The notes under the pieces: generated by a model
What the model was told of the DNA's origin: nothing
The model's database searches: none
Seen by the model: the letters and a program-made list of their open reading frames with translations, nothing else
Position numbers and translations under genes: made by a program
IMG/VR virus record: IMGVR_UViG_3300046170_000519
Span: 141,858-205,857 of that record
Length of the DNA stretch: 64,000 bases
Reading direction: 5' to 3' (one strand)
In this document: positions 23,856 to 64,000 of the stretch, one piece after another
Layout: each line of letters opens with the position of its first letter
Numbering within the stretch: the stretch's first letter is position 1

Positions 23856-25382
23856 TTATTTTGAAACAGCTCTCCATTTTACTCTATCGTTGCCACTATT
23901 ATCAAAAGCAAAAGAGTTAGTCGATCTGTTGCCGTAAGTAGAATAAACTTTATAAATCGTTCCATTAAAACTTACGTTATGAGAAGAAAGCACTGAGTCT
24001 GGTGATAATGTTGTGTCAACACCATTGATCGTTTTGATTATATCAAAATTTGGAGATACATGATCAATAGGCAACCAGAAGCTGTAAATATATTTATTAC
24101 CAGTTCCTTGAAAACAACCAGCGTTATTTCCGTAAGTGTTTTCTGGGATTGTAATTTCATTAAACAAACCGTCACCACTGAATTGATCAACGGGTATTTC
24201 TTGGAAGAAGCAAGATCCATAGACACTTGTACACTGTCCTGCATAAGTTTCTCCACTGTAGCAAGTATTTTGGTTGTCAACAACACTTGTTATGTAATCA
24301 GCTAATTCAGAAGGTGAGTCTACACCATTAATTATAGTAAAAGATTTTGCTGGTGAGACACTATTCGCGTTAAATAATTCCGCCCAGTCAAATGTAGAAT
24401 AATCTGTTCCGCTAGCAAGAGGTTGCTCTGCTACTTTGTGAGGTTCAGCTATTAAGTAGCCAACAGCACTAGGATTAGTGCCGCCAGCTTCTGTTGGAGT
24501 GTTTGTTTCTGTCATAGTTTCTGTATTAGTTTGAGTCTGAGTTTCAGTCTGAGTTTGAGTTTCAGTCTGAGTTTGAGTTTCGGTTTCAGTTTGGGTAAAT
24601 GAACCTGTTTCGGTCTGAGTTTGAGTTTCGGTCTGAGTTTGAGTTTCGGTCTGAGTTTGAGTTTCGGTTTCAGTTTGAGTTTCTGTTTCAGTTTGGGTAA
24701 ATGAACCTGTTTCAGTCTGGGTCTGAGTTTCGGTCTGAGTTTGAGTTTCGGTCTGAGTTTGAGTTTCGGTTTCAGTTTGAGTCTCTGTTTCAGTTTGGGT
24801 AAATGAACCTGTTTCAGTCTGAGTCTGAGTTTCAGTATAAGTTTGAGTTTCTGTTTGGGTCTGAGTTTCTGTTTCAGTTTGGGTAAATGAGCCTGTTTCA
24901 GTCTGAGTTTGAGTTTCTGTATAAGTTTGAGTTTCTGTTTCAGTCTGAGTTTCTGTTTCAGTCTGAGTTTCTGTTTCAGTCTGAGTAAATGAACCTGTTT
25001 CAGTCTGAGTAAACGAACCTGTTTCAGTCTGAGTAAATGTAGATGTATCTGTTTCCGTGAATGTAGGAGTTATTCCACAATGAGAAATTCTTTGATCAGA
25101 GGAGGTTGAGTAAGGGCTAACAAAAGCATGATTAATAGTTATTGATTTACCTTGTTGTAATTCAATATAATAAACTTTTCCGCATTCTAATTCTGAAAAA
25201 GATTGAGATGAACTAGCTGCAGCAATCCAAGATTTTGCAGACCCAGAATCATCAATTTGCCAAACCGTATTTATTTCAGATTTATGAGAATTAAGAGGAA
25301 AATTAGTACAACTAGATAGGCTTTGAGTTCCTGGACAGAAACCATACCATATGAAGTTATATTTTTTATTTAAGAGGGCCAT
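23856..25382 (-). CDS. T-repeat protein, 508 aa: Cys N-terminal domain, about 195-aa TETQ/GSFTQ spacer, globular C-terminal domain
   Basis: ORF track; N-terminal WYGFCP...LECGKVYYIEL shared with the 944-aa neighbour; repeats at about 24490-25075. Confidence 0.8.
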   Translation of the reverse strand: MALLNKKYNFIWYGFCPGTQSLSSCTNFPLNSHKSEINTVWQIDDSGSAKSWIAAASSSQSFSELECGKVYYIELQQGKSITINHAFVSPYSTSSDQRISHCGITPTFTETDTSTFTQTETGSFTQTETGSFTQTETETQTETETQTETETQTYTETQTQTETGSFTQTETETQTQTETQTYTETQTQTETGSFTQTETETQTETETQTQTETQTQTETQTQTETGSFTQTETETQTETETQTQTETQTQTETQTQTETGSFTQTETETQTQTETQTQTETQTQTNTETMTETNTPTEAGGTNPSAVGYLIAEPHKVAEQPLASGTDYSTFDWAELFNANSVSPAKSFTIINGVDSPSELADYITSVVDNQNTCYSGETYAGQCTSVYGSCFFQEIPVDQFSGDGLFNEITIPENTYGNNAGCFQGTGNKYIYSFWLPIDHVSPNFDIIKTINGVDTTLSPDSVLSSHNVSFNGTIYKVYSTYGNRSTNSFAFDNSGNDRVKWRAVSK

Positions 25383-25468: not shown

Positions 25469-28303
25469 TTATAAAGTTAAAATACATTTCCCCTCAGATA
25501 TATCACACTGATAACATTTATCATTATATGAAAGAATGATATTATTGCTAGCAAATTCTCCAACAGATGTTGCCCCCATAATAAAACTCATTGAGCTATT
25601 ATCTGATAGCCATATATCGATAGTAAAAGGAAGGCTGGTTGTTGATTTAGATATGTTTGGTAAACATACGCTTGAGTTTCCAACTAAACCTACATGAACT
25701 CCAGATAAAGTAATAACCTCTGAAGAAACTGGATCTATAATTTCTTGTATATTTGAGGAAATATCCACAGAATTTTGGCAGCAAGAAGTTGATGTATTGG
25801 TTGGGGTGCTTGGAAAAACAATAATATGAGTTAAAGTTCTTGTTTCAGTCTGAGTTTGGGTCTCTGTTTGAGTTTCAGTCTGAGTTTGTGTTTCTGTCTC
25901 CGTCTCTGTTTCAGTCTGAGTTTCAGTTTCTGTTTCGGTAAATGTATTTGTCTGAGTTTGAGTCTCTGTTTCAGTTTGAGTCTCTGTCTCTGTTTGAGTC
26001 TGAGTACTAGTTTCTGTCTCTGTTTCGGTCTGAGTCTGGGTCTCTGTTTGAGTTTCAGTCTGAGTTTGTGTTTCTGTCTCTGTCTCTGTTTGAGTCTGAG
26101 TACCAGTTTCTGTCTCTGTCTCTGTTTGAGTCTGAGTACCAGTTTCTGTCTCTGTCTCTGTTTCAGTCTGAGTCTGGGTCTCTGTTTGAGTTTCAGTCTG
26201 AGTTTGTGTTTCTGTCTCTGTCTCTGTTTCAGTCTGAGTTTCAGTTTCTGTTTCGGTAAATGTATTTGTCTGAGTTTGAGTCTCTGTTTCAGTTTGAGTT
26301 TCTGTCTCTGTTTCAGTCTGAGTACCAGTTTCTGTCTCTGTCTCTGTTTCAGTCTGAGTCTGGGTCTCTGTTTGAGTTTCAGTCTGAGTTTGTGTTTCTG
26401 TCTCTGTCTCTGTTTCAGTCTGAGTTTCAGTTTCTGTTTCGGTAAATGTATTTGTCTGAGTTTGAGTTTCTGTCTCTGTTTCAGTCTGAGTACCAGTTTC
26501 TGTCTCTGTCTCTGTTTCAGTCTGAGTTTGTGTTTCTGTCTCTGTCTCTGTTTCAGTCTGAGTTTCAGTTTCTGTTTCAGTTTGGGTTTCTGTCTCTGTT
26601 TCAGTCTGAGTACCAGTTTGAGTCTCTGTTTCAGTTTGAGTCTGAGTCTGGGTCTCTGTTTGAGTTTCAGTCTGAGTTTCAGTTTCTGTTTCGGTAAATG
26701 TATTTGTCTGAGTTTGAGTCTCTGTTTCAGTTTGAGTCTCTGTTTCAGTTTGAGTCTCTGTTTCAGTTTGAGTTTCTGTCTCTGTTTGAGTCTGAGTACC
26801 AGTTTCTGTCTCTGTCTCTGTTTCAGTCTGAGTCTGGGTCTCTGTTTGAGTTTCAGTCTGAGTTTGTGTTTCTGTCTCTGTCTCTGTTTCAGTCTGAGTT
26901 TCAGTTTCTGTTTCGGTAAATGTATTTGTCTGAGTTTGAGTCTCTGTTTCAGTTTGAGTTTCTGTCTCTGTTTCAGTCTGAGTACCAGTTTCTGTCTCTG
27001 TCTCTGTTTCAGTCTGAGTTTGTGTTTCTGTCTCTGTCTCTGTTTCAGTCTGAGTTTCAGTTTCTGTTTCAGTTTGGGTTTCTGTCTCTGTTTCAGTCTG
27101 AGTACCAGTTTCTGTTTCTGTCTCTGTTTCAGTCTGAGTCTGGGTCTGTGTTTGAGTTTCAGTCTGAGTTTCAGTTTCTGTTTCGGTAAATGTATTTGTC
27201 TGAGTTTGAGTCTCTGTTTCAGTTTGAGTCTCTGTTTCAGTTTGAGTCTCTGTTTCAGTTTGAGTTTCTGTCTCTGTTTGAGTCTGAGTACCAGTTTCTG
27301 TCTCTGTCTCTGTTTCAGTCTGAGTCTGGGTCTCTGTTTGAGTTTCAGTCTGAGTTTGTGTTTCTGTCTCTGTCTCTGTTTCAGTCTGAGTTTCAGTTTC
27401 TGTTTCGGTAAATGTATTTGTCTGAGTTTGAGTCTCTGTTTCAGTTTGAGTTTCTGTCTCTGTTTCAGTCTGAGTACCAGTTTCTGTCTCTGTCTCTGTT
27501 TCAGTCTGAGTTTGTGTTTCTGTCTCTGTCTCTGTTTCAGTCTGAGTTTCAGTTTCTGTTTCAGTTTGGGTTTCTGTCTCTGTTTCAGTCTGAGTACCAG
27601 TTTCTGTTTCTGTCTCTGTTTCAGTCTGAGTCTGGGTCTCTGTTTGAGTTTCAGTCTGAGTTTCAGTTTCTGTTTCGGTAAATGTATTTGTCTGAGTTTG
27701 AGTCTCTGTTTCAGTCTGAGTACCAGTTTCTGTCTCTGTCTCTGTTTCAGTCTGAGTCTGGGTCTCTGTTTGAGTCTGAGTCTGGGTCTCTGTTTGGGTC
27801 TGAGTACCAGTTTCTGTTTGAGTCTCCGTCTCTGTTTCAGTGAATGTATTTGTCTGGGTTTGAGTCTCTGTTTCTGTTTCTGTTTCTGTTTCAGAAATTG
27901 TTGGAGATACTGTCGGGGTTCCATCAGCACAACAACCTAAAGATAGTCTATATATATCTGTAGAACTTGAATGAGAAAATTGAAATTCAGGAATATCAAC
28001 AAATCCTTGCCCTGGTTTTAGAATAATTTTATAAGCTTTTCCGCACTCTAAGGATTTTATTCCAAGGAATGGAATTTGACTTTTAGTAGCTGAACTCGAA
28101 TAAGAAGACTCTGAAACTAAATCTTCAAAAGGATGTATAGCATAATAAATTTCTGGATGATTGTGATCGTTGTTATTAGAATCTCCCGCATCAATAGTTA
28201 CTAAATCAAAAGGGATACATTTCGCAGCACTTTCTTCAGGACAAGTCCCATACCACCCATAGTAAATTAGGTAATTGGATTGATTTTGATCTAAGCGAGC
28301 CAT
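25469..28303 (-). CDS. T-repeat protein, 944 aa: Cys N-terminal domain, about 685-aa TETQ spacer, CC-type C-terminal domain
   Basis: ORF track; N-terminal WYGTCP...LECGKAYKIIL; repeats at about 25840-27895. Confidence 0.8.
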   Translation of the reverse strand: MARLDQNQSNYLIYYGWYGTCPEESAAKCIPFDLVTIDAGDSNNNDHNHPEIYYAIHPFEDLVSESSYSSSATKSQIPFLGIKSLECGKAYKIILKPGQGFVDIPEFQFSHSSSTDIYRLSLGCCADGTPTVSPTISETETETETETQTQTNTFTETETETQTETGTQTQTETQTQTQTETQTQTETETETETGTQTETETQTQTNTFTETETETQTETQTETQTQTETETETETGTQTETETETQTETETETQTETETETETQTQTETETETETGTQTETETETQTETETQTQTNTFTETETETQTETETETETQTQTETQTETQTQTETETETETGTQTQTETETQTETETQTETETQTETETQTQTNTFTETETETQTETQTQTQTQTETETETETGTQTETETETQTETETETQTETETETETQTQTETETETETGTQTETETETQTETETQTQTNTFTETETETQTETETETETQTQTETQTETQTQTETETETETGTQTQTETETQTETETQTETETQTETETQTQTNTFTETETETQTETQTETQTQTQTETETQTGTQTETETETQTETETETQTETETETETQTQTETETETETGTQTETETETQTQTNTFTETETETQTETETETETQTQTETQTETQTQTETETETETGTQTETETETQTETETQTQTNTFTETETETQTETETETETQTQTETQTETQTQTETETETETGTQTQTETETETGTQTQTETETETQTQTETQTETQTQTETETETSTQTQTETETQTETETQTQTNTFTETETETQTETETETETQTQTETQTETQTQTETRTLTHIIVFPSTPTNTSTSCCQNSVDISSNIQEIIDPVSSEVITLSGVHVGLVGNSSVCLPNISKSTTSLPFTIDIWLSDNSSMSFIMGATSVGEFASNNIILSYNDKCYQCDISEGKCILTL
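26698..27681. repeat. near-perfect 492-bp tandem duplication inside the 944-aa gene spacer
   Basis: Shadow ORFs 26698-26919 and 27190-27411 translate identically; 26920-27189 and 27412-27681 differ by one residue; offset 492 nt (164 codons). Confidence 0.85.
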
Positions 28304-28304
28304 G

Positions 28305-30974
28305 TTAACTTATTGTTATAGAATAAACACCTCCGTTAAGATTTACGGTTTGACCCTCTAGCATCTTTACCATGTCTTCTACACTGGTGAATTCTGGGTA
28401 ATATGTATCTTTAGGTTGGAATGGGGAGTAATATGATTTGAGCATCATACCTTCAACATACAAATGGTTTTCTACCGAAATAACCGTTTCTGCTTGTACG
28501 AATCTAGGGCCTGAAGAAAAGAAAGAATTCCATTGTCCAGGATCGCTAGTCCATTCTAGTATAAAAGTCGAATCTGGTACAAGATAACGTACATATAAAC
28601 CACCAGCATCTTCTTCAACAGTAAGACCTGATAGTTTTGTTACCATGTCTTCTACACTAGCGAATTCTGAATAATATGTATCTTTAGGTTGGAATGGGGA
28701 ATAATATGATTTGAGCATCATACCTTCAACATACAAATGGTTTTCTACCGAAATAACCGTTCCTGCTTGTACGAATCTAGGGCCTGAGGAAAAGAAAGAA
28801 TTCCATTGTCCAGGATCGCTAGTCCATTCTAAATAAAACTTTTTCAATCTAGGAGCTGGCGTTTCAGTTTCTGTTTGAGTAAATGTTTCGGTAGTTGTTG
28901 GTGTTGGGATGATGCTGTTTACATTAACTAATATAATTGTGCTCTGATTAGGGCCTGTAAGCTCTCCTATCCAGCATTCTCCTCCATAAGTATATTTTAT
29001 TGAACCATTAGAAACACCAAATGAAAGAGTTACATATCCTGTAAAGGTTGGATTTTGAACAGAGTCTTGAATGAAATAAGATCTATTCGTTGTATCTGAT
29101 ACATCTAAATGGTAAAAGCAAAGAGTGCCTCCATTATCAAAACCATTTACATTAAAACCTGTATCCGCCGAAAATTGTGATCCCGTAGTTCTTGCTTGAA
29201 TATCCCCAAACCCATCACAGCAATTAGGCTCAGAAGTTTGTGTTTCTGTTTCAGTCCCTGTTTGGGTTAAAGTAAATGAGCCTGTCTCTGTTTGTGTTTC
29301 TGTATCAGTCTGAGTTTGCGTTTCTGTCTCAGTTTGGGTTTGTGTTTCTGTTTCGGTCTGAGTCTGAGTATGAGTTTCTGTTTCAGTCTGAGTCTGAGTG
29401 CCAGTTTCTGTTTCAGTCTCTGTATCAGTCTGAGTTTGCGTTTCTGTCTCAGTTTGGGTTTGTGTTTCTGTTTCGGTCTGAGTGTGAGTATGAGTTTTTG
29501 TTTCAGTCTGAGTCTGAGTGCCAGTTTCTGTTTCAGTCTCTGTAGTCGTCTGAGTTTCTGTCTCTGTCTCAGTCTGGGTTTGCGTTTCTGTCTCAGTTTG
29601 AGTTTGCGTTTCTGTTTCTGTCTCAGTTTGAGTTTGTGTTTCTGTCTCGGTCTGAGTCTGAGTTTGTGTTTCAGTCTGAGTCTGAGTTTCTGTTTCTGTT
29701 TGGGTAAATGTATTTGTCTGAGTTTGAGTATCTGTTTGGGTCTGAGTGCCAGTTTCTGTTTCAGTCTCTGTAGTCGTCTGAGTTTCTGTCCCTGTCTCAG
29801 TCTGAGTTTGCGTTTCTGTCTCAGTTTGGGTTTGTGTTTCTGTTTCAGTCTGAGTCTGAGTTTGTGTTTCTGTATCTGTATGGGTCTGAGTTTCTGTCTC
29901 GGTCTGAGTCTGAGTCTCTGTTTGAGTCTGAGTACCAGTTTCTGTTTCAGTAAATGTGTTTGTCTGAGTTTCTGTCTCGGTTTGAGTTTGCGTTTCTGTT
30001 TCTGTCTCGGTTTGAGTTTGCGTTTCTGTTTCAGTCTGAGTCTGAGTTTGTGTTTCTGTTTCAGTCTGAGTCTGAGTTTCTGTTTCTGTTTGGGTAAATG
30101 TATTTGTCTGAGTTTGAGTATCTGTTTGGGTCTGAGTGCCAGTTTCTGTCTCTGTTTCTGTTTCGGTCTGAGTCTGAGTTTCTGTATCTGTTTCCGTAAA
30201 TGTATTTGTCTGAGTTTGAGTTTCTGTCTCTGTTTGGGTTTGGGTTTCGGTTTGGGTAAAAGAACCTGTTTCAGTTTTTGTTTCTGTTCTTGTATTAGTA
30301 AATGTATTAGTATAAGTTTGGCTGTTTGTCGCAGTTTCGGTTTGGGTATCTGTATTTGTTTTAGTATGAGTTTGAGTCTCTGTTTCTGTATTAGTATCAG
30401 TTATTGTTGAAGTTTGAGTTGTTGTGTAAGACCCTGTTTCGGTTTGAGTTGGTGTTTCAGTTTCTGTTCTGGTTTGAGTTTGCGTGAATGAACCTGTTTC
30501 GGTTTGAGTCTCTGTAAATGAACCTGTTTCGGTTTCAGTTTCTGTATTTGAGGGAGTTTCCGTCGGGTTTGTTTCTGTTATAGTTGGTGATTTAGGTATT
30601 GAGTCTATTAGGAAATCAGGTTTATATATAGGATTATGGCAATGAGAAACAGTAAAATCACAACTAGAACTATTTACTTGAATTTTTAAAAAATTAAAAT
30701 TAAAAATTTGTTGATAATTTAATGTGTCTGAAGATTTTGAAGAAACCTCAAGGCTATAAATCTTTACCCAAGATTTTAAATTGATATCATTTGATACATA
30801 TATCGATATATCACTAGGAGAATCAGATTTATTATTTAAAAAAAGTGTAAAAGAATGAGTTAAATGCTTAGATATATCATAGTTTATAGACTCCGAAGAG
30901 CCTGAATCAGTAGGAAGCAATGAACCCGAAAATTCATAGCTAACTGATAGTGTTTTATTTAACTCAGACCTCAT
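28305..30974 (-). CDS. T-repeat protein, 889 aa: N-terminal domain, about 450-aa spacer, CC-type domain, duplicated C-terminal domain
   Basis: ORF track; repeats at about 29235-30580; the C-terminus has two copies of EWTSDPGQWNSFFSSGPRFVQA.TVISVENHLYVEGMMLKSYYSPFQPKDTYY. Confidence 0.8.
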   Translation of the reverse strand: MRSELNKTLSVSYEFSGSLLPTDSGSSESINYDISKHLTHSFTLFLNNKSDSPSDISIYVSNDINLKSWVKIYSLEVSSKSSDTLNYQQIFNFNFLKIQVNSSSCDFTVSHCHNPIYKPDFLIDSIPKSPTITETNPTETPSNTETETETGSFTETQTETGSFTQTQTRTETETPTQTETGSYTTTQTSTITDTNTETETQTHTKTNTDTQTETATNSQTYTNTFTNTRTETKTETGSFTQTETQTQTETETQTQTNTFTETDTETQTQTETETETETGTQTQTDTQTQTNTFTQTETETQTQTETETQTQTQTETETQTQTETETETQTQTETETQTNTFTETETGTQTQTETQTQTETETQTHTDTETQTQTQTETETQTQTETETQTQTETGTETQTTTETETETGTQTQTDTQTQTNTFTQTETETQTQTETQTQTQTETETQTQTETETETQTQTETETQTQTETETETQTTTETETETGTQTQTETKTHTHTQTETETQTQTETETQTQTDTETETETGTQTQTETETHTQTQTETETQTQTETETQTQTDTETQTETGSFTLTQTGTETETQTSEPNCCDGFGDIQARTTGSQFSADTGFNVNGFDNGGTLCFYHLDVSDTTNRSYFIQDSVQNPTFTGYVTLSFGVSNGSIKYTYGGECWIGELTGPNQSTIILVNVNSIIPTPTTTETFTQTETETPAPRLKKFYLEWTSDPGQWNSFFSSGPRFVQAGTVISVENHLYVEGMMLKSYYSPFQPKDTYYSEFASVEDMVTKLSGLTVEEDAGGLYVRYLVPDSTFILEWTSDPGQWNSFFSSGPRFVQAETVISVENHLYVEGMMLKSYYSPFQPKDTYYPEFTSVEDMVKMLEGQTVNLNGGVYSITIS
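28368..28831. repeat. direct repeat: 191-bp copies at 28368-28558 and 28641-28831 (offset 273 nt, 91 codons)
   Basis: Manual alignment gives 7 mismatches in 191 nt, all transitions. Confidence 0.9.
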
Positions 30975-53855: not shown

Positions 53856-56800
53856 TTATTGGCCTCCTAATATATTATTTTTATCTATTCTTTGCGCAAG
53901 AACAGATTCTAAATATCCAATAATCATAGGATCTTGCAATGCTTGCACTACCGATTGCTTAACAGCTGGTTTTAGATTTCTATTTATAGCTTCATTATTA
54001 AACTCGAATCTAACATCCCCTGTTACAGTGTGCTTCATAACCACTTCATTTAATTGCTCAGTTAACTGTTGTGGGAAAGATAGTATTGTTTCATTCACTG
54101 CTTCGAATAAAGTTCTAGAAGTGTCCAGTCCCTCAGTATTTAGCATTACAGATTCGTTAAAAAGGGCCATTTGTTCATTCAGGATGGATTGATTCTCTAA
54201 TAAAAGCATATTTGTTTCATTAAGTCTGTTGCTGGTCTCAATTAATAATTTATTACTTTCAACTAAAGGTTGGTTTCCTCCTCCGCCGTCACCGTTGCCA
54301 CCTGGAACTGGTTGATCACCTTTAGGTGTATTATTTAAAGATTGTACTACAGCCTGACCAACTGCTTGAGCTATCTCTCCGTAATTATTTAATTTTATAC
54401 CCTCTGACCTCTGCTTCAATAATTCATTTTGAACAGCTTTCATTGGATCTTCTAACCTAGTATAATCAGCTTCTCCAAGGAGTTTAGTCTGCTCTAATAT
54501 TGATTCATCAATTGCTTGCACAGCCTTCAAGTCTTCCACAGCTGTATGTTTCAATTCTTCCATTTTTTTTATAAGATCTGGACTTACATTATTAGCTCTA
54601 AATGTCTCAATAACCTTTTCTAAATTTCTAATACCTACCACAAAATTAGCTTCATCATTACTCATTCCAGTAAGTATTTGTTGTTGCACTCCTAGTATTT
54701 CAGCCAAACGTCTCGCATTTTCAACACTTAGAGCTTTCTCATCCATTGTATCTACAGTATTATCGGCAACGTAATCTCTTGGCCCAAATTCCCTATTTAG
54801 TAACTCACCAGTTCTTTCATTTCTGTATACATCTATACCTTCTCCAAGATCTGCGACATTTTTCAAATCTTCCTTGGATAAAAATTTACCACCTATTCCC
54901 TCCAACCTACCCCTACCAAGTTCAGCTCTTTCAAGTTTTCTATTTATAGCCGCTTTTTGTATCTCAATAGCTAATTTTTGCATACTTAAACTGCTCATCA
55001 TTGCTGCTTTTTCTGCGATAGCATTACCCTGTCCTCCAATAACCTGCAACTTACCTATAAATTGTTTTATTTCTTTAAGAGATATGTTTCCATCTTCATT
55101 ACTTTTTAAAAACGCTGTATAAGCATCCTGCATAGCTTGAGTACTTTCTTTTGTAGATTTCTCAAAAAATTGAGCGAAACCAGCTTGCCCAGTCAATACT
55201 TTTTCCTTCGCTTTAACCCCCTCCCCTTGCAAGAATGATTTTGATGCATCAGAGGGCTCGAATTCAGCTTTAGGCATTGAATTGCTTACAAGATTTATTA
55301 ATTCACTTTTTAACTGTAAATTGCTATCCGCTTTAATCTTTGAAACTTCATTTTCAGCTCTTCGATCAATTCCTTCGTCAGGAGATCTCGATCCACCATT
55401 TACTTTAAAATCATTAACAGCATTCCTAACCTGAAAAGAAGCTTCCAGTCTGGCTGAAGCTAATTCTAAATTGTTCTCAAATTTAGTTAAAATGTTATTT
55501 ATTAACTCTTGTTCTCTTATGAATTTTTGGTATTCTGAAATTAAAACCTCTTTTTGGTTTTTTAACCTCATTTCTGTATCCTGAGCTTTTTCTACAGCAT
55601 CAGAATATGCATCAACGCTTTGGGCAGCCTCTCGCTGGGATTCTATCAACTCAGAAAGCAATGCTGATCCTGCCAAATTAAATTCTCCATCTTCACCTTT
55701 TATAAATCTGTTCATATTATCTACAGTTTCATTGCCTCCTTTATATTTTTTTAACGACTGCCCTACTTCTGTGTCTCCAATATTAGAGCCTAATTCAACT
55801 AAAGTTTTAATAGTTTTATCTCTTAAATCATTAGCGACTTCATTTTCCATCTTGGCAATTTGTGCATCAAGCTCTAAATCTTCCTGCCTTTTAGCTGTAA
55901 TAGCTTCAGGAGTTAATCCCCTCAAATCAAAGCCTCCTAAACCTGCTGAACCATCAGATAATTGTTGTATCACTTTATCACTTGCCATTATTTCAATCTC
56001 TTTATCAATAACTTTATTAAGCTCAGCCCCTTTATCCTTAGCTTTTGCAAATTCGCCAAACATAGGATCAGCGCCCTTAAGCATTCTTTTATTGAAATCA
56101 TATGTGCCATTACCAAAAGCACTCATTGTTGCGGCTGTAGTTGCTTGAACTGCACTCCCAAATGAACTCGTAACAAGGCTATTAGGTTTAGAGTATTCAT
56201 CCGAATTAAGATCCTGGCCCATTTTAATTAATTGATCTTGAACAGTTAAATTCTTCTGAGCATCTTGCATGGTACGGTTAAGTATTCCTAATTTCTCTGA
56301 AGTGCTTAAACTTGAATTCGCTAACTCTCTCATTCTTTGAGCTTGTTTAGGATCAGATAAGGAGTTAATAGAATCTCTAATTTGTTGATTAGCGCTCACT
56401 ATTCCCGAAACATCTCCCATTTCAGTGGAGTTTTTTAAATCAACTAGTGATTGTCCAAAACTTTCTAGCTTACTGACATCTTTAAACTCTTCGTCAAGCT
56501 TCTTTTTTGCAGCAGCTAAAGCCTTAAAAGTCTTTGATTGATCCTCTTTTACTCCATACTCAGCCATCCCTTTTATAGCTCCGCCTGCTCCTCCCACAAT
56601 CATTCCTGGAGCCCCAAAAGCTGCACCGTATGACAATCCAGTTAAGGCATTTGTGGCAAGGCTAGCTCCGCCTCCAAGTTCTGGCCCCTGCCTCCCGTCA
56701 GCAATCATTTGAGCCCCCATCGGTCCCATGAACATAGCTCCCATAGCAAGCCCGCCCGACTTCCCCTTCAGGTTTTTATATCTTTGTGAATTTTCAGGGC

Positions 56801-59800
56801 TTCTAATATTACTTACAAATTTTGAAAAGCCTTTTTTTCCAGCGTTTCTTTTTTTGAATTCTTTTTGCCTTTGGTTTAGTTCGTAAGCTTGATTTTTATC
56901 AAGATCTGTGTAAGGGTTTATCAAACCTGATCCGCCTAGAAATCTACCATTTTTTCTATCCTGCTCTAAGTGGAATTTTTCTTGTCTTTTTCTCTCTCTT
57001 ATTTCTTCTATAGTCATTGCGAAAGAAGGTACTCCGTGAGTTTTAGGATCAATACCTTTTGCTTCAGACCTATTAATTCCTTGCTGCACACCCATAGGTT
57101 CATCTACGGTATTAATAACCGCTAACCCCATTGGATTCATTGAGTTCTTTAATTTAGAATGTTTTGATACTTTTATTTTATTAGAGGATATACCTCTTTG
57201 TTTTAAAGCTTTTGTCTCTCTTTCTATAGCTTCATCTAATGCAAAATTAGGCATAAATCCGTTTCCGAAATTTCTAATTTTCCCTCTATAATTTGGGCTT
57301 GCTGAATGCCGCAAGTATTCATTATCTAAATCTTTAATTGAGGAAATTTTCGCCTTTTGTTTATTATAGTAATACGTTAATTTATTTTTTGTCTCTTCGG
57401 GTAATACCCTGAATTGTTTAGAATTTAAAAATCTTTTAATATTATCCAAATCTTCTAAACGATGTCTTCTGCTGATTTTAAACACTTGCTTTCTATCTGT
57501 TGAAACAAGCGGTCTACTTTGCATATAACGACCATCCTTAGAAGCTTGCACCTTTTTATTAAAATCTGCAATTCTAGTACTTAATTTTGAAAATTCTTGT
57601 CCAGTCAAACCTTGCCTAACTTTTTTTTGTTGATTATTTTTTAAAATTAAATTACTAAAACTAGACTGCTTATCTGAAAAACTTCTCATAACTCTAGAGA
57701 AACTAGGTGTAAACCCAGAAGCAAAAGATTTTTTAGGCACTATTCTTTTTCCTCTCATTACATAACCCGTTTCTTTAGGTATTACTTTTTTATTACCAGC
57801 CCAATGTTGAGGTTTTGCATACTTACGATAATAACTATCTAAAGCTTTTTTCTGTATTTTTATTTCTTCAGCATTTCTTTCTAGCCTTTTAAGCTGTTCT
57901 AAAGATGGATCAGAACTCCTGCCTGATAATATATCCATTATCGATTGCTGGTTTGATGCAAAGCTTCTCTTTATTTCTTGATTTTTAAAACTATAAACTT
58001 CAGCATCTTTCTTTGGTAAATACATATAATTTTTACCAGTATCAACCTGAACCCCTCTAAAAGTTTCTTTTACAGATTTCTGTATTTTATTTAAACCAGT
58101 TATTCTGCTAGAAAAAGCTGCAGCTTTTCTAAAGTGCTCAGAAAAATCTATTTTTCTTTTTTCCCCTGAAATTCCGTAATCAACATCAGCATATGGATTT
58201 TTCATACCTTTATCGAAAGAGAAGGTTTTTGATAAAGTCTTTCTAGGTTCTTTAATTAGAGATTTTCCAGCTTTAACTATAGAACTTTCATTAACCCATT
58301 TATTGAAAGCGAACTGCGCCTTATTTGAAATTTTTGAAGATCTTTCAGTTTGTAATGGATTTTTAATATATCTTTTTTGTCTTTCTATTGCAGATAAATA
58401 AGGATTTTCTGTCGAACTTTTTGTTGGTGAAAATATTTTTTTACCAAGATTTGAAACTTTATTAAATGTATTTTCAGCTCGCTGTCTAACCTGAAGTCTT
58501 TCTGAAAAATTTCTCCAACTATCACTTATGGATTGAGGTGCATTTTTAATTTTTCCTGTTTTTTCATTTACTATTCTCGAAACTTGTTCTTTAATATTTT
58601 TTTGTTTTTTTCTTAGCGATAAAATTTCTTTTTTAATTTTACTAGCTTGATTAGCTGGCATATTTTTAATAGCTTCTGCTTTTGTCTTTATTGAGCTGGT
58701 TATTTCATCCCTCTTTGACATTAAAGACTCAAACTTCCTAGATATTGATTGTCCATTAAATTTTTGTATCAAATTAGCTAACTGATCTTTTCTTCTTGCA
58801 GTCATTTGATTTACAGAGCCACCTATGTCTTGATATATATTTTTAATTTTATCTTTTTGCTCTATTATAGATCCTTTAATGTCTATTTTTTTTGCCGCTT
58901 GCATTTTCCCCAGCATAGCTGTGTTTTGCGATAATCTTTTGAGTGATATCCCCCCAGAAGAGCCTTCTCTACCTTTTTTGGTTATTGCTATTGTTGACAT
59001 TAAATTAGACAAAGAGGCATCAGCAACCCCCCTGAATCCCTTGCCTCCAAATTTCGTAATAACATTTTTAACTCCTTGAGGTTTAAGTTGCAGAGTGTGC
59101 TCTCCATTACTTAAAGCTTTACCTATCGTAAAGGAAGGGTCTAGTGACTGAACTGATCCCGTTTGCTTATTAGTTCCTAATTTTATATTTTTTGCTACAG
59201 ATCTTAGATTTTGACCTAATTGTTGTTTTTCTATATCTATAGTAGGTTTAAATCCAAGCCTTGATAGAAGACTTTTACCTGCTCCATATCTTTGAGCATC
59301 AAGCAATTGTTTATTTACTTTTTTTGTTACAAAATCTAAAACTTTTTTATTGCTTACTATTTGATTAATTATAGCTTTATTATTAAAATTTATTGGCTTT
59401 CCATCTTTTAATATTCCACCTTCTTTATCGACACTAATATTCATATTAGTTGATACTCCCCCTATATTTTTCGATAAAGCTTGTCTAGTATGATCTTCTA
59501 ACCCAAAACCTATTTCTTTAGCGAAATTAGGTATATAACCTTCAGATAAATGATTTATTACATTATTCGAATATTGAGGGCTTAAATGGTTAGATTCAAA
59601 ATTTGGGATAAATCCTTCAGAAAAATTTTGCTTAAACCCTTGAATTATGTCATCTATTTTTTCTTTTTTTAAATATTTAAGTTCAACCTTAAAAGGTCGG
59701 TCTTGAGGAAGTGGGTTATTGTAATAATTTTTTCTTTCATAAAAACCTGCATTTCCTAATTTTATTTTTTTACCAAGCTCGTAATCTCTCTTTTTCTGAG

Positions 59801-62800
59801 CCTCTAAATCTTGTTTCTCTTTTTGTAAAGCTTTATTAAAGTTTTTGGATACATACGGAGGAATGTCAGACCTAGTTGATAAATATTTAGAAAAAGATTC
59901 TACTTCTTTTAAATCTCCTTGTACTCTCTGATATTTAGGGCTTATCCATTCAGTTTTTGAGCTTTCCCAGTCAGGGGTATTAAACTTAGCTTCCTTAAAT
60001 TTTTTCCCTTTAAATAAGAAATTGCCTTTAGGATCTTCTATTCCTTTTATGTTCCTAATTGATGTAACTCGTTTTATCCCACCTCTCATCGCATAATTTG
60101 GAATAAATCCTTTAGAGAAATTTTTGCCAATCCAAAGATTCTCAAGTCTTACTAATTTATCTTGTTTATGAGCATTTCGCCCTAAACCAAACTGCCTCAG
60201 GGATTTAATCAATTTTCTTTCTTCTCCAGGTAAATATTCTGCCTGATCCCTTGTTTTAAACTTTCCAGACTCACGATAATAATTTTCTTGCCTAAATCCT
60301 TCTACCCTCTTTCTTAATTGAACGGGGTTAAAAACTCCTTCCATTTGCATTTTTGGAATATTTTTTGAAAGCCTTTTCCTGTCTAATATTTTTTTTGCGG
60401 ACAATAAAGCTCTTGGGATCCTGGGTCCAATTACAGAACCAGCATCTATTTTAGTATAAGGTCTCCCAGATTTAGCTGCAGATTCAATTTCTTTTATTAA
60501 TTTTTTATATATACTTGAACCAAACTCACCCTCATTAGCTCTGATGTGACGCACATTTAAAACACGCTCTTTACCCCTGTTCATGTCATAAACATTGCTA
60601 CTCCTACCAAATCCTGGTCGTTTAACCATAAAATTAGGCACAAACCCTTTTGACATATTTGGTAATTTTTTTCTTGAAGGGCCAAACTCTTTTCTTGTTT
60701 TTCTGGATACTTCTTGTTGTTTCTGTTTATCTGTTTCCGATATCTTTTGTCTTACATCTGGAAGTTTTAAAACTTTTTGAACAAAATCTCCTTTTGTTCC
60801 TTGACTTATCCCTATTTTTGCATCAGCAAAAGGAGTGTAGTAACCAAATAAACTTTGGAGAGCTTTATCTGGAAAGCCTGATATGTCGAAAGTAGCATTG
60901 TTTTGAGAAAATAATTTATTTTTTCCAATAGAAGATAAAGCTGTTTCAAAAACAGATCCTGCAGCGGAACCGACACTTCCTGCATTTGCCATTTTTGTTA
61001 TTGGGTTATTATTTGAAGCAAACCTTCCTCCAGATAATTCACTAGCAAGTTTCTTAGATTCGCCTAGCATTAAGTTTTTTAATTTTTCTCTAGTTTTTGT
61101 CTCTGTACCCTGCAGGCTCTTATTTTTGATTCCTTCAATTCTGTATTTAATTCTTGTCTTATTTCCATCTTTTGGAGAGTGAATAGTGTCAACTTTTTGC
61201 CTAACATTATTTCTCGCAACCAACATCGTTGCTTGCCTACTTGCGTCAATAGTATTTATTTGATTTCTTTTTCTTTTTGTCTCTATTGCTTGGTTATTCA
61301 TAACATCTTTGTTATACCTAGCTTTAAAACCTAAAAGAGCTTTTTGCTCTTCACTGGAGAAATCTTTAATAGTCAGTTTTTCATTGTTTAAGTTTATCGG
61401 CTTGCCCTCTCTTAAATTTCTAACCCTTTGAACACTTACAAACCCTCTTTGGGTAGCAACTCCAGATTTTGAAAAGTTCGGGACATATCCTTTTGTTAAA
61501 TTTTTAACATACTCTGGGACATACCCTTTTGAATAATTAAAATTTACCCCATGAGGGAATAGGGGGTTTTCAGTTTGTTGATCTTTTGGTGAATTTTTTT
61601 TCTTTGCTGTTATTTTACTTTCCCTAAGAACTGTATCTGATGGAGTTATCATATTAATTCCACCAGAAAACATTGTTCTTCCCCCTTTAGTTAAATTAAT
61701 CTTGTCGGTTTTATTATTCTTAATTCCAATTTTTGGTTGATTAAAGCTAGCTTGAGAATTAGTTAAGGCTAGTAACCACTCTGAAGCAGCCTTTTTTAAT
61801 CCCACTATTATGTTCTGCTCTGTTGTGGCTTTAGTTTCGAAACTTTTTTCAGATTTATTTTTTTTGCTTCTCGCAGTTAAATCCATGAAGGCGTTTTTTC
61901 CTGTAAATTTTATATCAGAAAATCCAGATTTAGCTAGGTAATTTTTACTCTCCATTTCTCCAACTAAACCTTTAGCTTTTCCTGTTAATGTCCCAAAAGC
62001 TTGATGGACTGCATAAGGTCTTTTACCGTAATAAGGTCTTTTCGCTATGTTTTCTGCGGATTTAAATATCCCCTTGTAAGACCCACTTTTTACAAGATCC
62101 CCATATGTTTGTTTAATTCTTTTTACGGCGTCTGGATTGATTTTATATTTAGTTAAGTTTGGATCTTTGTTTTTTGGATCTCTTACTATTAAACCTTGAA
62201 TTTGACTATTGCCCTTAACTATTTTATTAGCTTCTTTCTTGAAGTGATCATTGTCATGACTCATTCTGTGAACATTCAACTTCCCAGTAAATACATCTGT
62301 TAAGTCTGCATATTGAGATATTATTGATCCACCTCCATCAAACCCTCCTAGCTTGGAAGCTGAATAGCTATATGTTTTTCCACTTAAGCTTTGTCCATAT
62401 TTTTGTCTCGAAAAATTTGGTATATATCCGTCCGCTGCATTTACTTTTTTAGCTCCATTTGGTAATCCATATTGTTTAGCCATATCTCTATTGAAAACAG
62501 CATCGGCTCCAGAATTTTTAAAATTCTTCACAATCCACTCCCCTGTATTTACAACCACATCAGAGGATTGCCCTGGCCTCATTTTAATTTTTGTTTTTAC
62601 AGGTTTATCCCCTTTTCTTGCTCCACCTATACCCCTACTGACATCTAAACTTTCTTTTTCAAATGCGGGTAAAAATCCATTAGCTAAAGATAGAGTTTTT
62701 CTGCCTTTAGCTCTCGATGATCTTTTACCCATAGGTACAAACCCTACATCTGTTGCCCCCACACCAATTAACCTAGAACTCGCCGCTATTCTTTTGATTA

Positions 62801-64000
62801 AAGCTTCTTGCTTCAGTCTTTCGGCTGTTTCTTGTTTTATTGTATTTAATATTATCTGTTCTTGCTTTGCTGTGTTCGAACCTGCTGCAAGAATTTTTTG
62901 ATATATATTTGAATTGGTTGTTAAAATTTGACTTATTGCAGCTTGTAAACCTTGCTGTCTTTTTGTTTCTGAATTTAATCCGAGAATATCAGAAAAAGCT
63001 TCTTTCGCAAATTTTGTAACAAGACCAAATATTTTTATAAATGCAGCTCCTAAAATTACCATCCCTGGCCCAGTCAGGAAGCTACCAATTCCACTAATTA
63101 AGTTTTTTGCTAAGTTAGATCCACTGTCTTCAGAAAGTATTTCATTAAATTTTTTAGCTAAATTATTTAAAAAAGTAAGAATCTCTTTAAAGTTATCTGA
63201 AAAAGCTATATCCCCAATAGAAGAAGCTAATTCTTTTGCGCTTAAGGATGTTTGAGTGAATAGAGCTGACAGTGTTTTGTTTAACTCCTCATTTCTTTTC
63301 GTCGCTTCATTCGTTGTATTATTAGCCACATTTAAAGCATCATTATAAATGGAGTATCCACTGTTTAGATCTTGTATTAAGGCTTGCAGATTTTGAATTT
63401 GATAAACTCCAGCTAATTGCTCTGCTGTATAAGCTTTTTGACTATCAGAGAGGTTTTTATAAACATTTGCATAATCTAATATTATATCCATACCTCCACG
63501 AAAAGTTCCATCTAAATTTCTTGTAGCTACGCCAATTTCTTCCAAAGCTTCTCTAACCCCGCTTCTTTTTATTCTTGTGAAAATACTTTTAAATCCGTTA
63601 CCTATTACTGATCCACCCCTCGCAGTTCTTTGCTGCACTGCAGTCACAACAGCAGCTAATTCATTAAACTCAACACCTGAAGATTGCGCAACAGCTCCTG
63701 CCCTTGATAAAGCTTCAGCTAAATCAGCTGAAGACACAGCAAAAGCAGCATCAACATTAGCCATTCTATTAACTATCTGGGTGTGAGTTATTCCTTCTTC
63801 ATTAAAAGAATTAATTGCAGCTGTTAAAGTTTCTGTTGATTTTACTGTATCCAACCCTGACAATCTACTAAGTATTAAAGCTGAATTAACTCTAGCTAAA
63901 GTTTCTTCAGCACTTAAACCCTGTCTGGCTAATTCTGTCGCAGATTCCGCCACAGCAGAAAAAGATGTTGCAGTGTTTCTAGCTACATCAAACAATCCTT
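53856..64000 (-). CDS. tail tape measure protein, TP901-like, with large modular insert (start outside the window)
   Basis: TP901-type core LARQG...AVSSADLAEALSRAG...GV.FNELAA...TAR.GSVIGN.FKSIFTRI; Gly/Ala hydrophobic segments at about 56.5-56.8 kb; frame open to the window edge, so the TTG at 63995 is not the true start. Confidence 0.9.
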   Translation of the reverse strand, partial: GLFDVARNTATSFSAVAESATELARQGLSAEETLARVNSALILSRLSGLDTVKSTETLTAAINSFNEEGITHTQIVNRMANVDAAFAVSSADLAEALSRAGAVAQSSGVEFNELAAVVTAVQQRTARGGSVIGNGFKSIFTRIKRSGVREALEEIGVATRNLDGTFRGGMDIILDYANVYKNLSDSQKAYTAEQLAGVYQIQNLQALIQDLNSGYSIYNDALNVANNTTNEATKRNEELNKTLSALFTQTSLSAKELASSIGDIAFSDNFKEILTFLNNLAKKFNEILSEDSGSNLAKNLISGIGSFLTGPGMVILGAAFIKIFGLVTKFAKEAFSDILGLNSETKRQQGLQAAISQILTTNSNIYQKILAAGSNTAKQEQIILNTIKQETAERLKQEALIKRIAASSRLIGVGATDVGFVPMGKRSSRAKGRKTLSLANGFLPAFEKESLDVSRGIGGARKGDKPVKTKIKMRPGQSSDVVVNTGEWIVKNFKNSGADAVFNRDMAKQYGLPNGAKKVNAADGYIPNFSRQKYGQSLSGKTYSYSASKLGGFDGGGSIISQYADLTDVFTGKLNVHRMSHDNDHFKKEANKIVKGNSQIQGLIVRDPKNKDPNLTKYKINPDAVKRIKQTYGDLVKSGSYKGIFKSAENIAKRPYYGKRPYAVHQAFGTLTGKAKGLVGEMESKNYLAKSGFSDIKFTGKNAFMDLTARSKKNKSEKSFETKATTEQNIIVGLKKAASEWLLALTNSQASFNQPKIGIKNNKTDKINLTKGGRTMFSGGINMITPSDTVLRESKITAKKKNSPKDQQTENPLFPHGVNFNYSKGYVPEYVKNLTKGYVPNFSKSGVATQRGFVSVQRVRNLREGKPINLNNEKLTIKDFSSEEQKALLGFKARYNKDVMNNQAIETKRKRNQINTIDASRQATMLVARNNVRQKVDTIHSPKDGNKTRIKYRIEGIKNKSLQGTETKTREKLKNLMLGESKKLASELSGGRFASNNNPITKMANAGSVGSAAGSVFETALSSIGKNKLFSQNNATFDISGFPDKALQSLFGYYTPFADAKIGISQGTKGDFVQKVLKLPDVRQKISETDKQKQQEVSRKTRKEFGPSRKKLPNMSKGFVPNFMVKRPGFGRSSNVYDMNRGKERVLNVRHIRANEGEFGSSIYKKLIKEIESAAKSGRPYTKIDAGSVIGPRIPRALLSAKKILDRKRLSKNIPKMQMEGVFNPVQLRKRVEGFRQENYYRESGKFKTRDQAEYLPGEERKLIKSLRQFGLGRNAHKQDKLVRLENLWIGKNFSKGFIPNYAMRGGIKRVTSIRNIKGIEDPKGNFLFKGKKFKEAKFNTPDWESSKTEWISPKYQRVQGDLKEVESFSKYLSTRSDIPPYVSKNFNKALQKEKQDLEAQKKRDYELGKKIKLGNAGFYERKNYYNNPLPQDRPFKVELKYLKKEKIDDIIQGFKQNFSEGFIPNFESNHLSPQYSNNVINHLSEGYIPNFAKEIGFGLEDHTRQALSKNIGGVSTNMNISVDKEGGILKDGKPINFNNKAIINQIVSNKKVLDFVTKKVNKQLLDAQRYGAGKSLLSRLGFKPTIDIEKQQLGQNLRSVAKNIKLGTNKQTGSVQSLDPSFTIGKALSNGEHTLQLKPQGVKNVITKFGGKGFRGVADASLSNLMSTIAITKKGREGSSGGISLKRLSQNTAMLGKMQAAKKIDIKGSIIEQKDKIKNIYQDIGGSVNQMTARRKDQLANLIQKFNGQSISRKFESLMSKRDEITSSIKTKAEAIKNMPANQASKIKKEILSLRKKQKNIKEQVSRIVNEKTGKIKNAPQSISDSWRNFSERLQVRQRAENTFNKVSNLGKKIFSPTKSSTENPYLSAIERQKRYIKNPLQTERSSKISNKAQFAFNKWVNESSIVKAGKSLIKEPRKTLSKTFSFDKGMKNPYADVDYGISGEKRKIDFSEHFRKAAAFSSRITGLNKIQKSVKETFRGVQVDTGKNYMYLPKKDAEVYSFKNQEIKRSFASNQQSIMDILSGRSSDPSLEQLKRLERNAEEIKIQKKALDSYYRKYAKPQHWAGNKKVIPKETGYVMRGKRIVPKKSFASGFTPSFSRVMRSFSDKQSSFSNLILKNNQQKKVRQGLTGQEFSKLSTRIADFNKKVQASKDGRYMQSRPLVSTDRKQVFKISRRHRLEDLDNIKRFLNSKQFRVLPEETKNKLTYYYNKQKAKISSIKDLDNEYLRHSASPNYRGKIRNFGNGFMPNFALDEAIERETKALKQRGISSNKIKVSKHSKLKNSMNPMGLAVINTVDEPMGVQQGINRSEAKGIDPKTHGVPSFAMTIEEIRERKRQEKFHLEQDRKNGRFLGGSGLINPYTDLDKNQAYELNQRQKEFKKRNAGKKGFSKFVSNIRSPENSQRYKNLKGKSGGLAMGAMFMGPMGAQMIADGRQGPELGGGASLATNALTGLSYGAAFGAPGMIVGGAGGAIKGMAEYGVKEDQSKTFKALAAAKKKLDEEFKDVSKLESFGQSLVDLKNSTEMGDVSGIVSANQQIRDSINSLSDPKQAQRMRELANSSLSTSEKLGILNRTMQDAQKNLTVQDQLIKMGQDLNSDEYSKPNSLVTSSFGSAVQATTAATMSAFGNGTYDFNKRMLKGADPMFGEFAKAKDKGAELNKVIDKEIEIMASDKVIQQLSDGSAGLGGFDLRGLTPEAITAKRQEDLELDAQIAKMENEVANDLRDKTIKTLVELGSNIGDTEVGQSLKKYKGGNETVDNMNRFIKGEDGEFNLAGSALLSELIESQREAAQSVDAYSDAVEKAQDTEMRLKNQKEVLISEYQKFIREQELINNILTKFENNLELASARLEASFQVRNAVNDFKVNGGSRSPDEGIDRRAENEVSKIKADSNLQLKSELINLVSNSMPKAEFEPSDASKSFLQGEGVKAKEKVLTGQAGFAQFFEKSTKESTQAMQDAYTAFLKSNEDGNISLKEIKQFIGKLQVIGGQGNAIAEKAAMMSSLSMQKLAIEIQKAAINRKLERAELGRGRLEGIGGKFLSKEDLKNVADLGEGIDVYRNERTGELLNREFGPRDYVADNTVDTMDEKALSVENARRLAEILGVQQQILTGMSNDEANFVVGIRNLEKVIETFRANNVSPDLIKKMEELKHTAVEDLKAVQAIDESILEQTKLLGEADYTRLEDPMKAVQNELLKQRSEGIKLNNYGEIAQAVGQAVVQSLNNTPKGDQPVPGGNGDGGGGNQPLVESNKLLIETSNRLNETNMLLLENQSILNEQMALFNESVMLNTEGLDTSRTLFEAVNETILSFPQQLTEQLNEVVMKHTVTGDVRFEFNNEAINRNLKPAVKQSVVQALQDPMIIGYLESVLAQRIDKNNILGGQ
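57018..62684 (-). repeat. dispersed peptide motif G[FY]xP[NSAE][FY], 11 copies including variants, inside the tape measure protein
   Basis: Copies near 62670 (GFLPAF), 62420 (GYIPNF), 61520 (GYVPEY), 61480 (GYVPNF), 60640 (GFVPNF), 60100 (GFIPNY), 59605 (GFIPNF), 59530 (GYIPNF), 57710 (GFTPSF), 57250 (GFMPNF) and 57025 (GVPSF). Confidence 0.85.

Follow-up and report, generated by a model that had tools for sequence, protein, structure and literature searches.

In tailed phages the tape measure protein (TMP) occupies the lumen of the tail, its length sets the length of the tail at about 0.15 nm per residue, and at infection it is the first component to be expelled; in lambda and T5 it is also processed. 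Some TMPs carry embedded enzymatic domains, as is the case of the Rpf-like and peptidase motifs of mycobacteriophage TM4, of pb2 of phage T5, and of the lytic transglycosylase or M23 domains found in the TMPs of phages of Gram-positive bacteria. In this work we analyzed a stretch of 64,000 nucleotides (the window; positions 141,858 to 205,857 of IMG/VR virus record IMGVR_UViG_3300046170_000519) in which a minus-strand open reading frame (ORF), assigned by its sequence matches to the TP901-type TMPs, contains a modular array whose units are joined by a short peptide motif, G[FY]xPN[FY]. As in the TMPs with enzymatic domains, a TMP core (PF10145 here) has added, apparently functional domains, in a kind of protein that is expelled at infection and often processed. 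In contrast, the known inserts are one or two cell-wall hydrolases, and here 8-10 basic modules extend over 1,800 aa, the predicted fold is that of a nuclease and not a muralytic one, a motif is present at the junctions, and the modules are shuffled.

Other systems resemble this TMP in part. Viral polyproteins also carry a short consensus at the end of each unit, placed in flexible linkers and followed by a small residue; here, searches of the genome for Prp, S78 and ClpP detected no protease. To our knowledge, polyproteins with a cleavage consensus have not been described for tailed phages. The type VI secretion system (T6SS), through the lumen of Hcp, and the extracellular contractile injection systems likewise place proteins in a tube homologous to the phage tail tube and expel them into a target cell, but their cargo consists of separate polypeptides loaded by means of signal peptides or Hcp binding, whereas here the modules are a covalent part of the ruler. 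Polymorphic toxins vary at their C-terminal tips and have immunity genes or silent cassettes next to them; in the clade of the window's TMP the variable modules are internal, the flanks carry no motif-bearing cassettes, and the modules are seen only in these TMPs. The polyvalent proteins are giant, mosaic, multi-domain phage proteins that are thought to enter the host with the DNA, show a fast turnover of domain combinations, and for which processing into units has been proposed (Iyer et al. 2017, PMC5512222). The TMP described here is also a giant mosaic multi-domain protein, probably encoded among late/virion genes; however, the survey of polyvalent proteins mentions neither TMPs nor the junction motif (PMC5512222), and the hallmark domains (zincin-like peptidase, ParB-like) are absent here, given that Pfam recognized only PF10145 in this TMP and in two TMPs of a distant clade.

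Among cultured phages, the nearest TMP cores are those of the Lactococcus 949-group phages and Bacillus phage vB_BsuS_PJN02, with 26% identity over the PF10145 region. The TMPs of LW81 (949 group; 3,213 aa) and PJN02 (3,080 aa) are similar in length, but the motif and a basic middle part are both missing from them, and a tblastn search of 50,697 cultured phage genomes with the cargo region gave no match. Literature searches with the motif strings, and with TMP combined with polyvalent, effector or polyprotein, returned no relevant paper. Features that appear to be new are a predicted restriction-nuclease fold within a TMP, modules that are numerous, re-assorted and uniformly basic, and a motif dedicated to their junctions.

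Organization of the array and its junction motif

The TMP frame enters the window from its right end. The start codon lies 117 codons into the start of the contig, and the whole protein has about 3,497 aa; its 99%-identical cluster representative, P0001, stands in for it in most analyses. The identification of this ORF as a TMP by the sequence-only reading, made from the letters and the translated ORFs of the window, agrees with a PF10145 match (phage minor tail protein, TP901/TIGR01760-type TMP core) of 102.5 bits against a cut-off of 33.2, covering residues 6-197 of the window protein, and with matches of PHROG TMP families to the N-terminus (9e-42). No other Pfam family was found in the protein, and no muralytic domain was detected. 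The parts of the TMP are the following:

53856..64000, minus strand: part of the TMP gene in the window, 3,380 open codons, aa 118-3497 of about 3,497
62661..64000, minus strand: N-terminal core A, ending in the first, variant motif GFLPAF
about 63408-63983, minus strand: PF10145 domain inside core A
about 63000-63101, minus strand: conserved transmembrane-like hydrophobic segment inside core A
62412..62660, minus strand: module G, 83 aa, right after the core in all relatives, ending in GYIPNF
61509..62411, minus strand: module B, 301 aa, predicted globular alpha/beta, with the motif GYVPEY in its disordered C-terminal 31 aa
about 61629-61970, minus strand: putative Mrr-like PD-(D/E)xK core of module B, with invariant GxxGE, FD, ExK and QN
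61473..61508, minus strand: "empty slot" of 12 aa, hardly more than a second motif, GYVPNF
60630..61472, minus strand: module C, 281 aa, in every relative at a variable position, with invariant FETA, FDI and ADAKI
60093..60629, minus strand: module E, 179 aa, found in 13 of 26 TMPs with a length of 179-183 aa throughout and an identity of 51-82%
59598..60092, minus strand: module F, 165 aa, in 11 of 26 TMPs
59523..59597, minus strand: "empty slot" of 25 aa, ending in GYIPNF
57699..59522, minus strand: composite segment of 608 aa with a Lys-rich middle part, ending in GFTPSF
57243..57698, minus strand: module I, 152 aa, common to 7 TMPs and present twice in P0002, ending in GFMPNF
57021..57242, minus strand: K-like module, 74 aa, preceding the C-terminal region in most relatives, ending in the degenerate GVPSF
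53856..57020, minus strand: C-terminal region D, about 1,050-1,100 aa, with a Gly/Ala-rich hydrophobic start and then acidic

Between residues 441 and 2252 of the window protein there are 10 copies of the motif in a relaxed form (G[FYVWL].P.[FYW]), and 7 of these also obey the strict form G[FY]xPN[FY]. Eleven copies had been counted by the sequence-only reading; ten of them stand, and the eleventh is a degenerate GVPSF that aligns with full motifs of homologues. The copies are located as follows:

62661-62678, minus strand: motif copy at aa 441
62412-62429, minus strand: motif copy at aa 524
61509-61526, minus strand: motif copy at aa 825
61473-61490, minus strand: motif copy at aa 837
60630-60647, minus strand: motif copy at aa 1118
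60093-60110, minus strand: motif copy at aa 1297
59598-59615, minus strand: motif copy at aa 1462
59523-59540, minus strand: motif copy at aa 1487
57699-57716, minus strand: motif copy at aa 2095
57243-57260, minus strand: motif copy at aa 2247
about 57021-57038, minus strand: degenerate eleventh copy, GVPSF

The segments enclosed by the motifs measure 12-608 aa, as had been estimated, and the two nearly adjacent pairs that had been noticed are real (12 aa and 25 aa apart, start to start); the existence of tandem motifs with almost nothing between them indicates that the motif is autonomous. In 20,000 shuffles of the protein, the mean was 0.11 relaxed and 0.002 strict copies, and no copy was found outside the TMP ORF in the six frames of the 205,857-bp genome; a chance origin is therefore excluded. 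The flanks of 18 related loci (about 10 kb) were also devoid of the motif. From 109 copies in 13 homologues, the consensus N-[FAYM]-[SA]-x-G-[FYL]-[IV]-P-N-F-[AS]-[KR] was obtained, in which the residue after the motif (+1) is Ala or Ser in 61% of the copies. The six motif residues are nearly invariant across clades whose modules are no more than 35% identical. In contrast, every degenerate codon position varies among the copies (GGA/GGG/GGT, ATA/ATT/ATC, CCA/CCT/CCG/CCC, AAT/AAC), and their mean pairwise nucleotide identity is 70% over 18 nt. Since the synonymous sites vary freely, selection must act on the peptide and not on the DNA, and the proposal that the motif is a recombination junction at the DNA level is disfavoured. 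A kinship with the propeptides of capsid or scaffold proteins (Prp-type processing, Firmicutes phages) was considered and discarded, given that no other ORF has the motif and no Prp gene was found.

All the modules are basic (pI 9.7-10.6), with a net charge close to +190 over the array of about 1,800 residues, which bears out the Lys/Arg richness described in the sequence-only reading; this uniform basicity suggests nucleic-acid binding. The C-terminal region has a pI of 5.4, its length is nearly constant, and it is 20-35% identical among relatives. The segment of 608 aa is built of smaller blocks, each shared piecewise with other TMPs. In most relatives the G and K-like modules, of about 80 aa each, flank the array, and their profile comparison with hhalign (57% probability, E = 1e-4, 78 columns) suggests that they may be distant homologues. 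In the window's TMP a Gly/Ala-rich hydrophobic stretch forms the start of the C-terminal region, unlike P0003 (residues 1999-2038), P0008 (2127-2149) and P0013 (1938-2015), in which such glycine-zipper-like stretches occur inside the array. An argument on topology from the positive-inside rule was dropped, since the second hydrophobic stretch is weak here and varies in position among relatives.

Relatives were collected with a word-indexed search limited to the cargo region, which gave 13 homologues, and with a scan of viral contigs, which gave 12 more loci; in addition, 1,200 residues of the array were compared exhaustively by phmmer with 1.84 billion cluster representatives, and only 27 proteins were retrieved, each a giant TMP-like protein (2,488-4,831 aa) or part of one. 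The related TMPs, about 25, range from 2,488 to 5,756 aa (2.3-fold), with many clustered at 3,380-3,700 aa, and the motif, in the extended form N-[FA]-[SA]-x-G-[FY]-[IV]-P-N-F-[AS], is present 3-14 times in every full-length relative. The proteins were cut at the motif and the pieces clustered (26 proteins). The N-core has 544-659 aa, apart from the N-terminally truncated record P0010, and module B is the first after the core in all 26 clustered proteins, whereas in the distant TMPs P0028 and P0033 module C takes its place. A further 25 or so module families are present in some proteins and not in others, and their copy number and order also vary; for instance, the order is C-E-F here, E-C in P0002, E-L-F-C in P0003 and C-E-F-L in P0007. 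The array measures between about 320 and about 4,080 aa. The modules have exact lengths (179, 222, 166, 276 and so on), and pairwise local alignments start and stop within 17 residues of the motif ends. In the clade of the window's TMP the C-terminal region has mostly 835-1,230 aa; in a second clade (P0024-P0027), whose single module detected by phmmer is only about 35% identical, motif-bearing modules reach within 183-252 aa of the C-terminus and there are 10-14 copies of the motif. The modules are 50-80% identical among relatives, compared with 20-35% for the C-terminal region; therefore, their sequence is more tightly constrained than that of the presumed ruler.

The comparison that had been proposed to evaluate the sequence-only reading thus came out in its favour: some 25 homologues share the N-core, B or C, and the C-terminal region, and the segments between their motifs are not the same in number, identity or order. 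These results show that the motif is specific to the TMP, is selected as a peptide, and marks the sites where modules are gained, lost, duplicated and reordered. To call the region a polymorphic effector array is an overstatement, given that the pool of modules is small and found only in these TMPs, and that a function can be assigned to one or two of them at most.

In two relatives (L021, 1-8554, and L022, 3798-17194), the TMP frame is split into several ORFs in different frames. The breaks in L022 are probably indel errors of a polished long-read assembly; those in L021, a short-read contig, could be real splits or frameshifts. Public contigs compared with the region gave no usable evidence of cassette variants, since the filter leaves holes and a lone skip of 203 nt has the support of 21 nt. 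In two deep seawater runs, contigs end or branch at about 60814-60851, within module C, with alternative sequence beyond; this branching may reflect co-occurring strain variants that differ downstream, and the holes left by the contig filter are uninterpretable.

Modules B and C as candidate nucleases

A model of the 963 residues of B-C-E-F showed mixed alpha/beta structure with a mean predicted local distance difference test (pLDDT) of 46, which is too uncertain for fold searching; all six motifs in it lie in coil with pLDDT below 50. Module B was also modelled alone with AlphaFold 2. In this model (pLDDT 85.3, predicted template modelling score 0.79) about 265 residues form a globular alpha/beta domain, and the last 31, which include the motif, are disordered; it agrees with the earlier view that the segments are not a continuous helical ruler. 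The order of its elements (helix H133-161, strands E164-169, E178-182 and E188-193, helix H202-222) is alpha-beta-beta-beta-alpha. Four residues, E152, D177, E192 and K194, are invariant in 12 diverse sequences and map to the helix and to the second and third strands, which is the arrangement of the PD-(D/E)xK nucleases.

Four structure libraries were compared with this model. The Foldseek matches in the PDB were mostly restriction enzymes, Hjc, HamA, DdmD, MGME1 and FAN1; VIA-align ranked the nuclease domain of FAN1 first; the AlphaFold DB clusters gave entries annotated as restriction endonuclease, Mrr or PD(D/E)XK with a probability of 0.9-0.99; and the ESM Atlas gave Mrr_cat, NOV_C, PDDEXK_5 and PDDEXK_14. 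Because the four libraries agree and the invariant residues fall on the canonical elements, module B is quite likely, on the strength of its model, to be a domain with an Mrr-like PD-(D/E)xK nuclease fold. For module C, the residues E176, D196, D217 and K219 (E, D, DxK), invariant in 13 sequences, resemble the PD-(D/E)xK signature, and C is probably a second nuclease domain of this type. Of the two nuclease-like segments claimed originally, B is thus sustained by fold and invariant residues, and C by the sequence signature only. A profile comparison between B and C aligned nothing but the motif; therefore, the modules did not arise by divergence of a single repeat. The nuclease-fold domains could act on host DNA, on competing elements or on the end of the DNA of the phage itself.

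Several results weigh against these assignments. The structural matches of module B are each weak: no Foldseek match in the PDB reached E ≤1e-3, and the VIA-align Z of 6.3 for FAN1 is under the background stated for that tool. Its best curated sequence model is NOV_C with E = 0.097, in 1 of 12 members, and PDB profiles gave nothing relevant. The half of module C that carries the signature has a pLDDT below 50 in the only model, that of 963 aa, and neither a family nor an atlas match was found for it. In general, Pfam searches with the single modules and with all the members of their alignments, as well as PDB sequence profiles, gave no match for any module, and feature searches of the ESM Atlas gave none for C and E.

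The phage genome and the neighbouring genes

The record is a single-contig genome of an uncultured virus, with 205,857 bp and rated complete, of which the window is the last 64 kb; the G+C content of the phage is about 30%. At least 13 metagenome runs from seawater contain the same DNA, as do aquatic metatranscriptome libraries, hence we regard it as a real, recurrent marine phage. The TMP gene spans both contig ends (window position 64000 and L001, 1-375) with no terminal repeat, and its frame passes from the end of the contig to its start without a stop; the genome is therefore circularly permuted, although the record is classed as "linear". The large terminase gene (TerL) lies 16 kb upstream of the TMP gene on the same strand, no sheath family was detected, and the gene order around the TMP gene is kept in relatives. 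Nearly all of its neighbours lack a recognizable family in Pfam or PHROG.

The gene adjoining the TMP gene upstream (L001, 376-1371, minus strand) encodes a protein of 331 aa without a known family. Its size and position are kept in relatives (329 aa in L015 and L020), it is 34% identical in the distant TMP clade, and it could be a partner or chaperone of the TMP. Both this protein and a second upstream protein of 270 aa are acidic, in contrast to the basic array. The "integrase family protein" encoded at the equal position in LW81 and PJN02 was considered as its counterpart and rejected, since no similarity was found, and a -1 frameshift joining the 270-aa and 331-aa ORFs was discarded, since the sequence is unlike a canonical slippery site.

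At the other end of the window there is an imperfect tandem repeat of about 19 kb (3624-22887, minus strand; ORF 16282..22887 and onward) with a period of 6/24/66 nt, for which Tandem Repeats Finder reports 756 copies of a 24-nt unit. It encodes a (Thr-Glu/Thr-Gln)n dipeptide repeat of several thousand residues, its G+C content is 0.45 versus 0.30 elsewhere, and its AT skew is -0.6; the frames open on both strands of this stretch are due to the repeat. Shorter Thr-Glu/Thr-Gln coding arrays are present at 24528-25034, 25841-27841 and 29290-30185, within the minus-strand ORFs 23856..25382, 25469..28303 and 28305..30974, and together these arrays look like a family of Thr-rich repeat proteins. 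Two tRNA genes were found in the whole genome (G000:C1), tRNA-Thr(UGU) and tRNA-Cys, at 82631-82706 and 45838-45912, outside the window. The giant repeat gene is filled with two Thr codons, of which one, ACA, is read by tRNA-Thr(UGU); this tRNA may therefore support its translation.

Possible roles of the array

The TMP contains a modular array with a junction motif maintained at the peptide level; of this we have practically no doubt. To explain it, we propose a composite TMP in which the TP901-type N-core and the acidic C-terminal region (about 1,100 aa) bracket a string of independently folding basic domains, each ending in a disordered tail of 20-30 residues with the motif. Inside the tail the array would share the lumen with the other parts of the TMP, and it would be expelled to the host envelope or cytoplasm before the DNA. 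The motif would most likely be a proteolytic site, in which the cut falls between the final Phe and a small residue; made once the tail is assembled or after ejection, this cut would release the basic domains, directed at nucleic acids, in a polyprotein-like manner. Reordering at the motif would be a by-product, given that selection tolerates in-frame joining nowhere but at the linkers. Delivery and processing are suggested by established TMP biology, namely the occupancy of the lumen, the early expulsion, and the processing in lambda and T5; moreover, the Ala or Ser at +1 in 61% of the copies and the tolerated tandem copies fit a protease site. Taken whole, with its processing step, we would place this statement near an even chance, on the lower side; cleavage at the motif, taken alone, we consider somewhat less likely than not. 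The most explicit version is rather unlikely: a polyprotein injection device cut at every G[FY][IV]PNF by an unrecognized phage or host protease, or by Asn-mediated self-cleavage, which would release into the host cytoplasm, ahead of the genome, a mixture of basic proteins that target nucleic acids, Mrr-like nucleases among them; this mixture would be specific to the strain and re-assorted between phages by linker recombination.

Docking is an almost equally good reading of the motif as processing. The motif would then be a docking or packaging signal: the module tails would bind the inner wall of the tube or a chaperone (e.g. the 331-aa or the 270-aa protein), which would keep the modules soluble or unfolded and thread them into the lumen, and the TMP would stay whole; we consider this possible but doubtful. 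A short linear motif, selected as a peptide, present once per module and placed in disordered linkers, has an anatomy that fits docking as well as cleavage. The conservation of the 331-aa protein in a distant clade that keeps the same motif, the opposite charges of the upstream proteins and the array, and the lack of a Prp, S78 or ClpP protease in the genome also speak for docking, and there are established precedents: the lambda gpG/gpGT chaperones bind the TMP at many sites, and the effectors of T6SS and extracellular contractile injection systems are loaded in the homologous tube. However, a docking peptide has no need of Ala or Ser at +1, and tandem copies 12-27 aa apart would be redundant for it.

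That the motif is the neutral end of an ancestral repeat or linker, whose coding likeness (GGN TTY ATH CCN AAY TTY) favours illegitimate recombination, seems improbable. The coincidence of block edges with motifs, the duplicated and permuted modules, and the "empty slots" that resemble deletion scars would agree with it, but the freely varying synonymous positions and the mean nucleotide identity of the copies do not, the near-invariance of six residues between clades with highly diverged modules is unexpected of a neutral linker, and B and C, with the motif as their sole common part, are not one diverged repeat. It is very improbable that the TMP is a long ruler of the ordinary kind whose middle third only adds length to a very long tail, as in other large siphophages, with a basic charge that matches an acidic lumen and nuclease-like folds that are inactive relics. 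Cultured siphophages do have TMPs of like size (LW81 and PJN02), many relatives fall within a narrow range of length, and part of the segment of 608 aa is Lys-rich and, to judge by its sequence, may be helical; however, the TMPs of LW81 and PJN02 lack both the motif and the basic middle part, module B is predicted as compact alpha/beta and not as a helix, the modules are better conserved than the ruler-like C-terminal region, residues of catalytic type are invariant, and total length varies 2.3-fold among relatives.

Delivery followed by processing has its own difficulties, which count against it. The searches of the genome for Prp, S78 and ClpP found no protease, and almost all the neighbouring genes lack a Pfam or PHROG match. 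Some internal junctions in relatives have a decayed motif (e.g. GHIPNF, GFIPKP) and others have none; together with GVPSF in the window's TMP, they indicate that the motif is not obligatory everywhere. Given that the modules are found only in these TMPs, they are not drawn from a general effector pool. Finally, the lumen of the tail tube is about 4 nm wide and holds three TMP chains; folded domains of 18-33 kDa in three chains would fit tightly, and they may be unfolded or structural there. As a rough estimate of volume, a 4-nm lumen offers 12.6 nm3 per nm and a residue takes about 0.13 nm3, so that three arrays would fill about 100 nm if compact, versus 270 nm if helical.

TMPs have been treated as rulers with an occasional cell-wall hydrolase; here, about half of the protein consists of re-assortable basic domains, with a predicted nuclease fold among them, joined by a dedicated motif. 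This motif is a simple sequence handle to find and delimit such cargo in metagenomic phages, and the recurrence of the phage in seawater samples means that material for testing exists. If the array is delivered and processed, the lumen of the siphophage tail would be a route of protein injection comparable to that taken by the cargo of T6SS and of extracellular contractile injection systems, tailed phages would express proteins in a polyprotein-like way, and 0.15 nm of tail per TMP residue would no longer hold as a rule.

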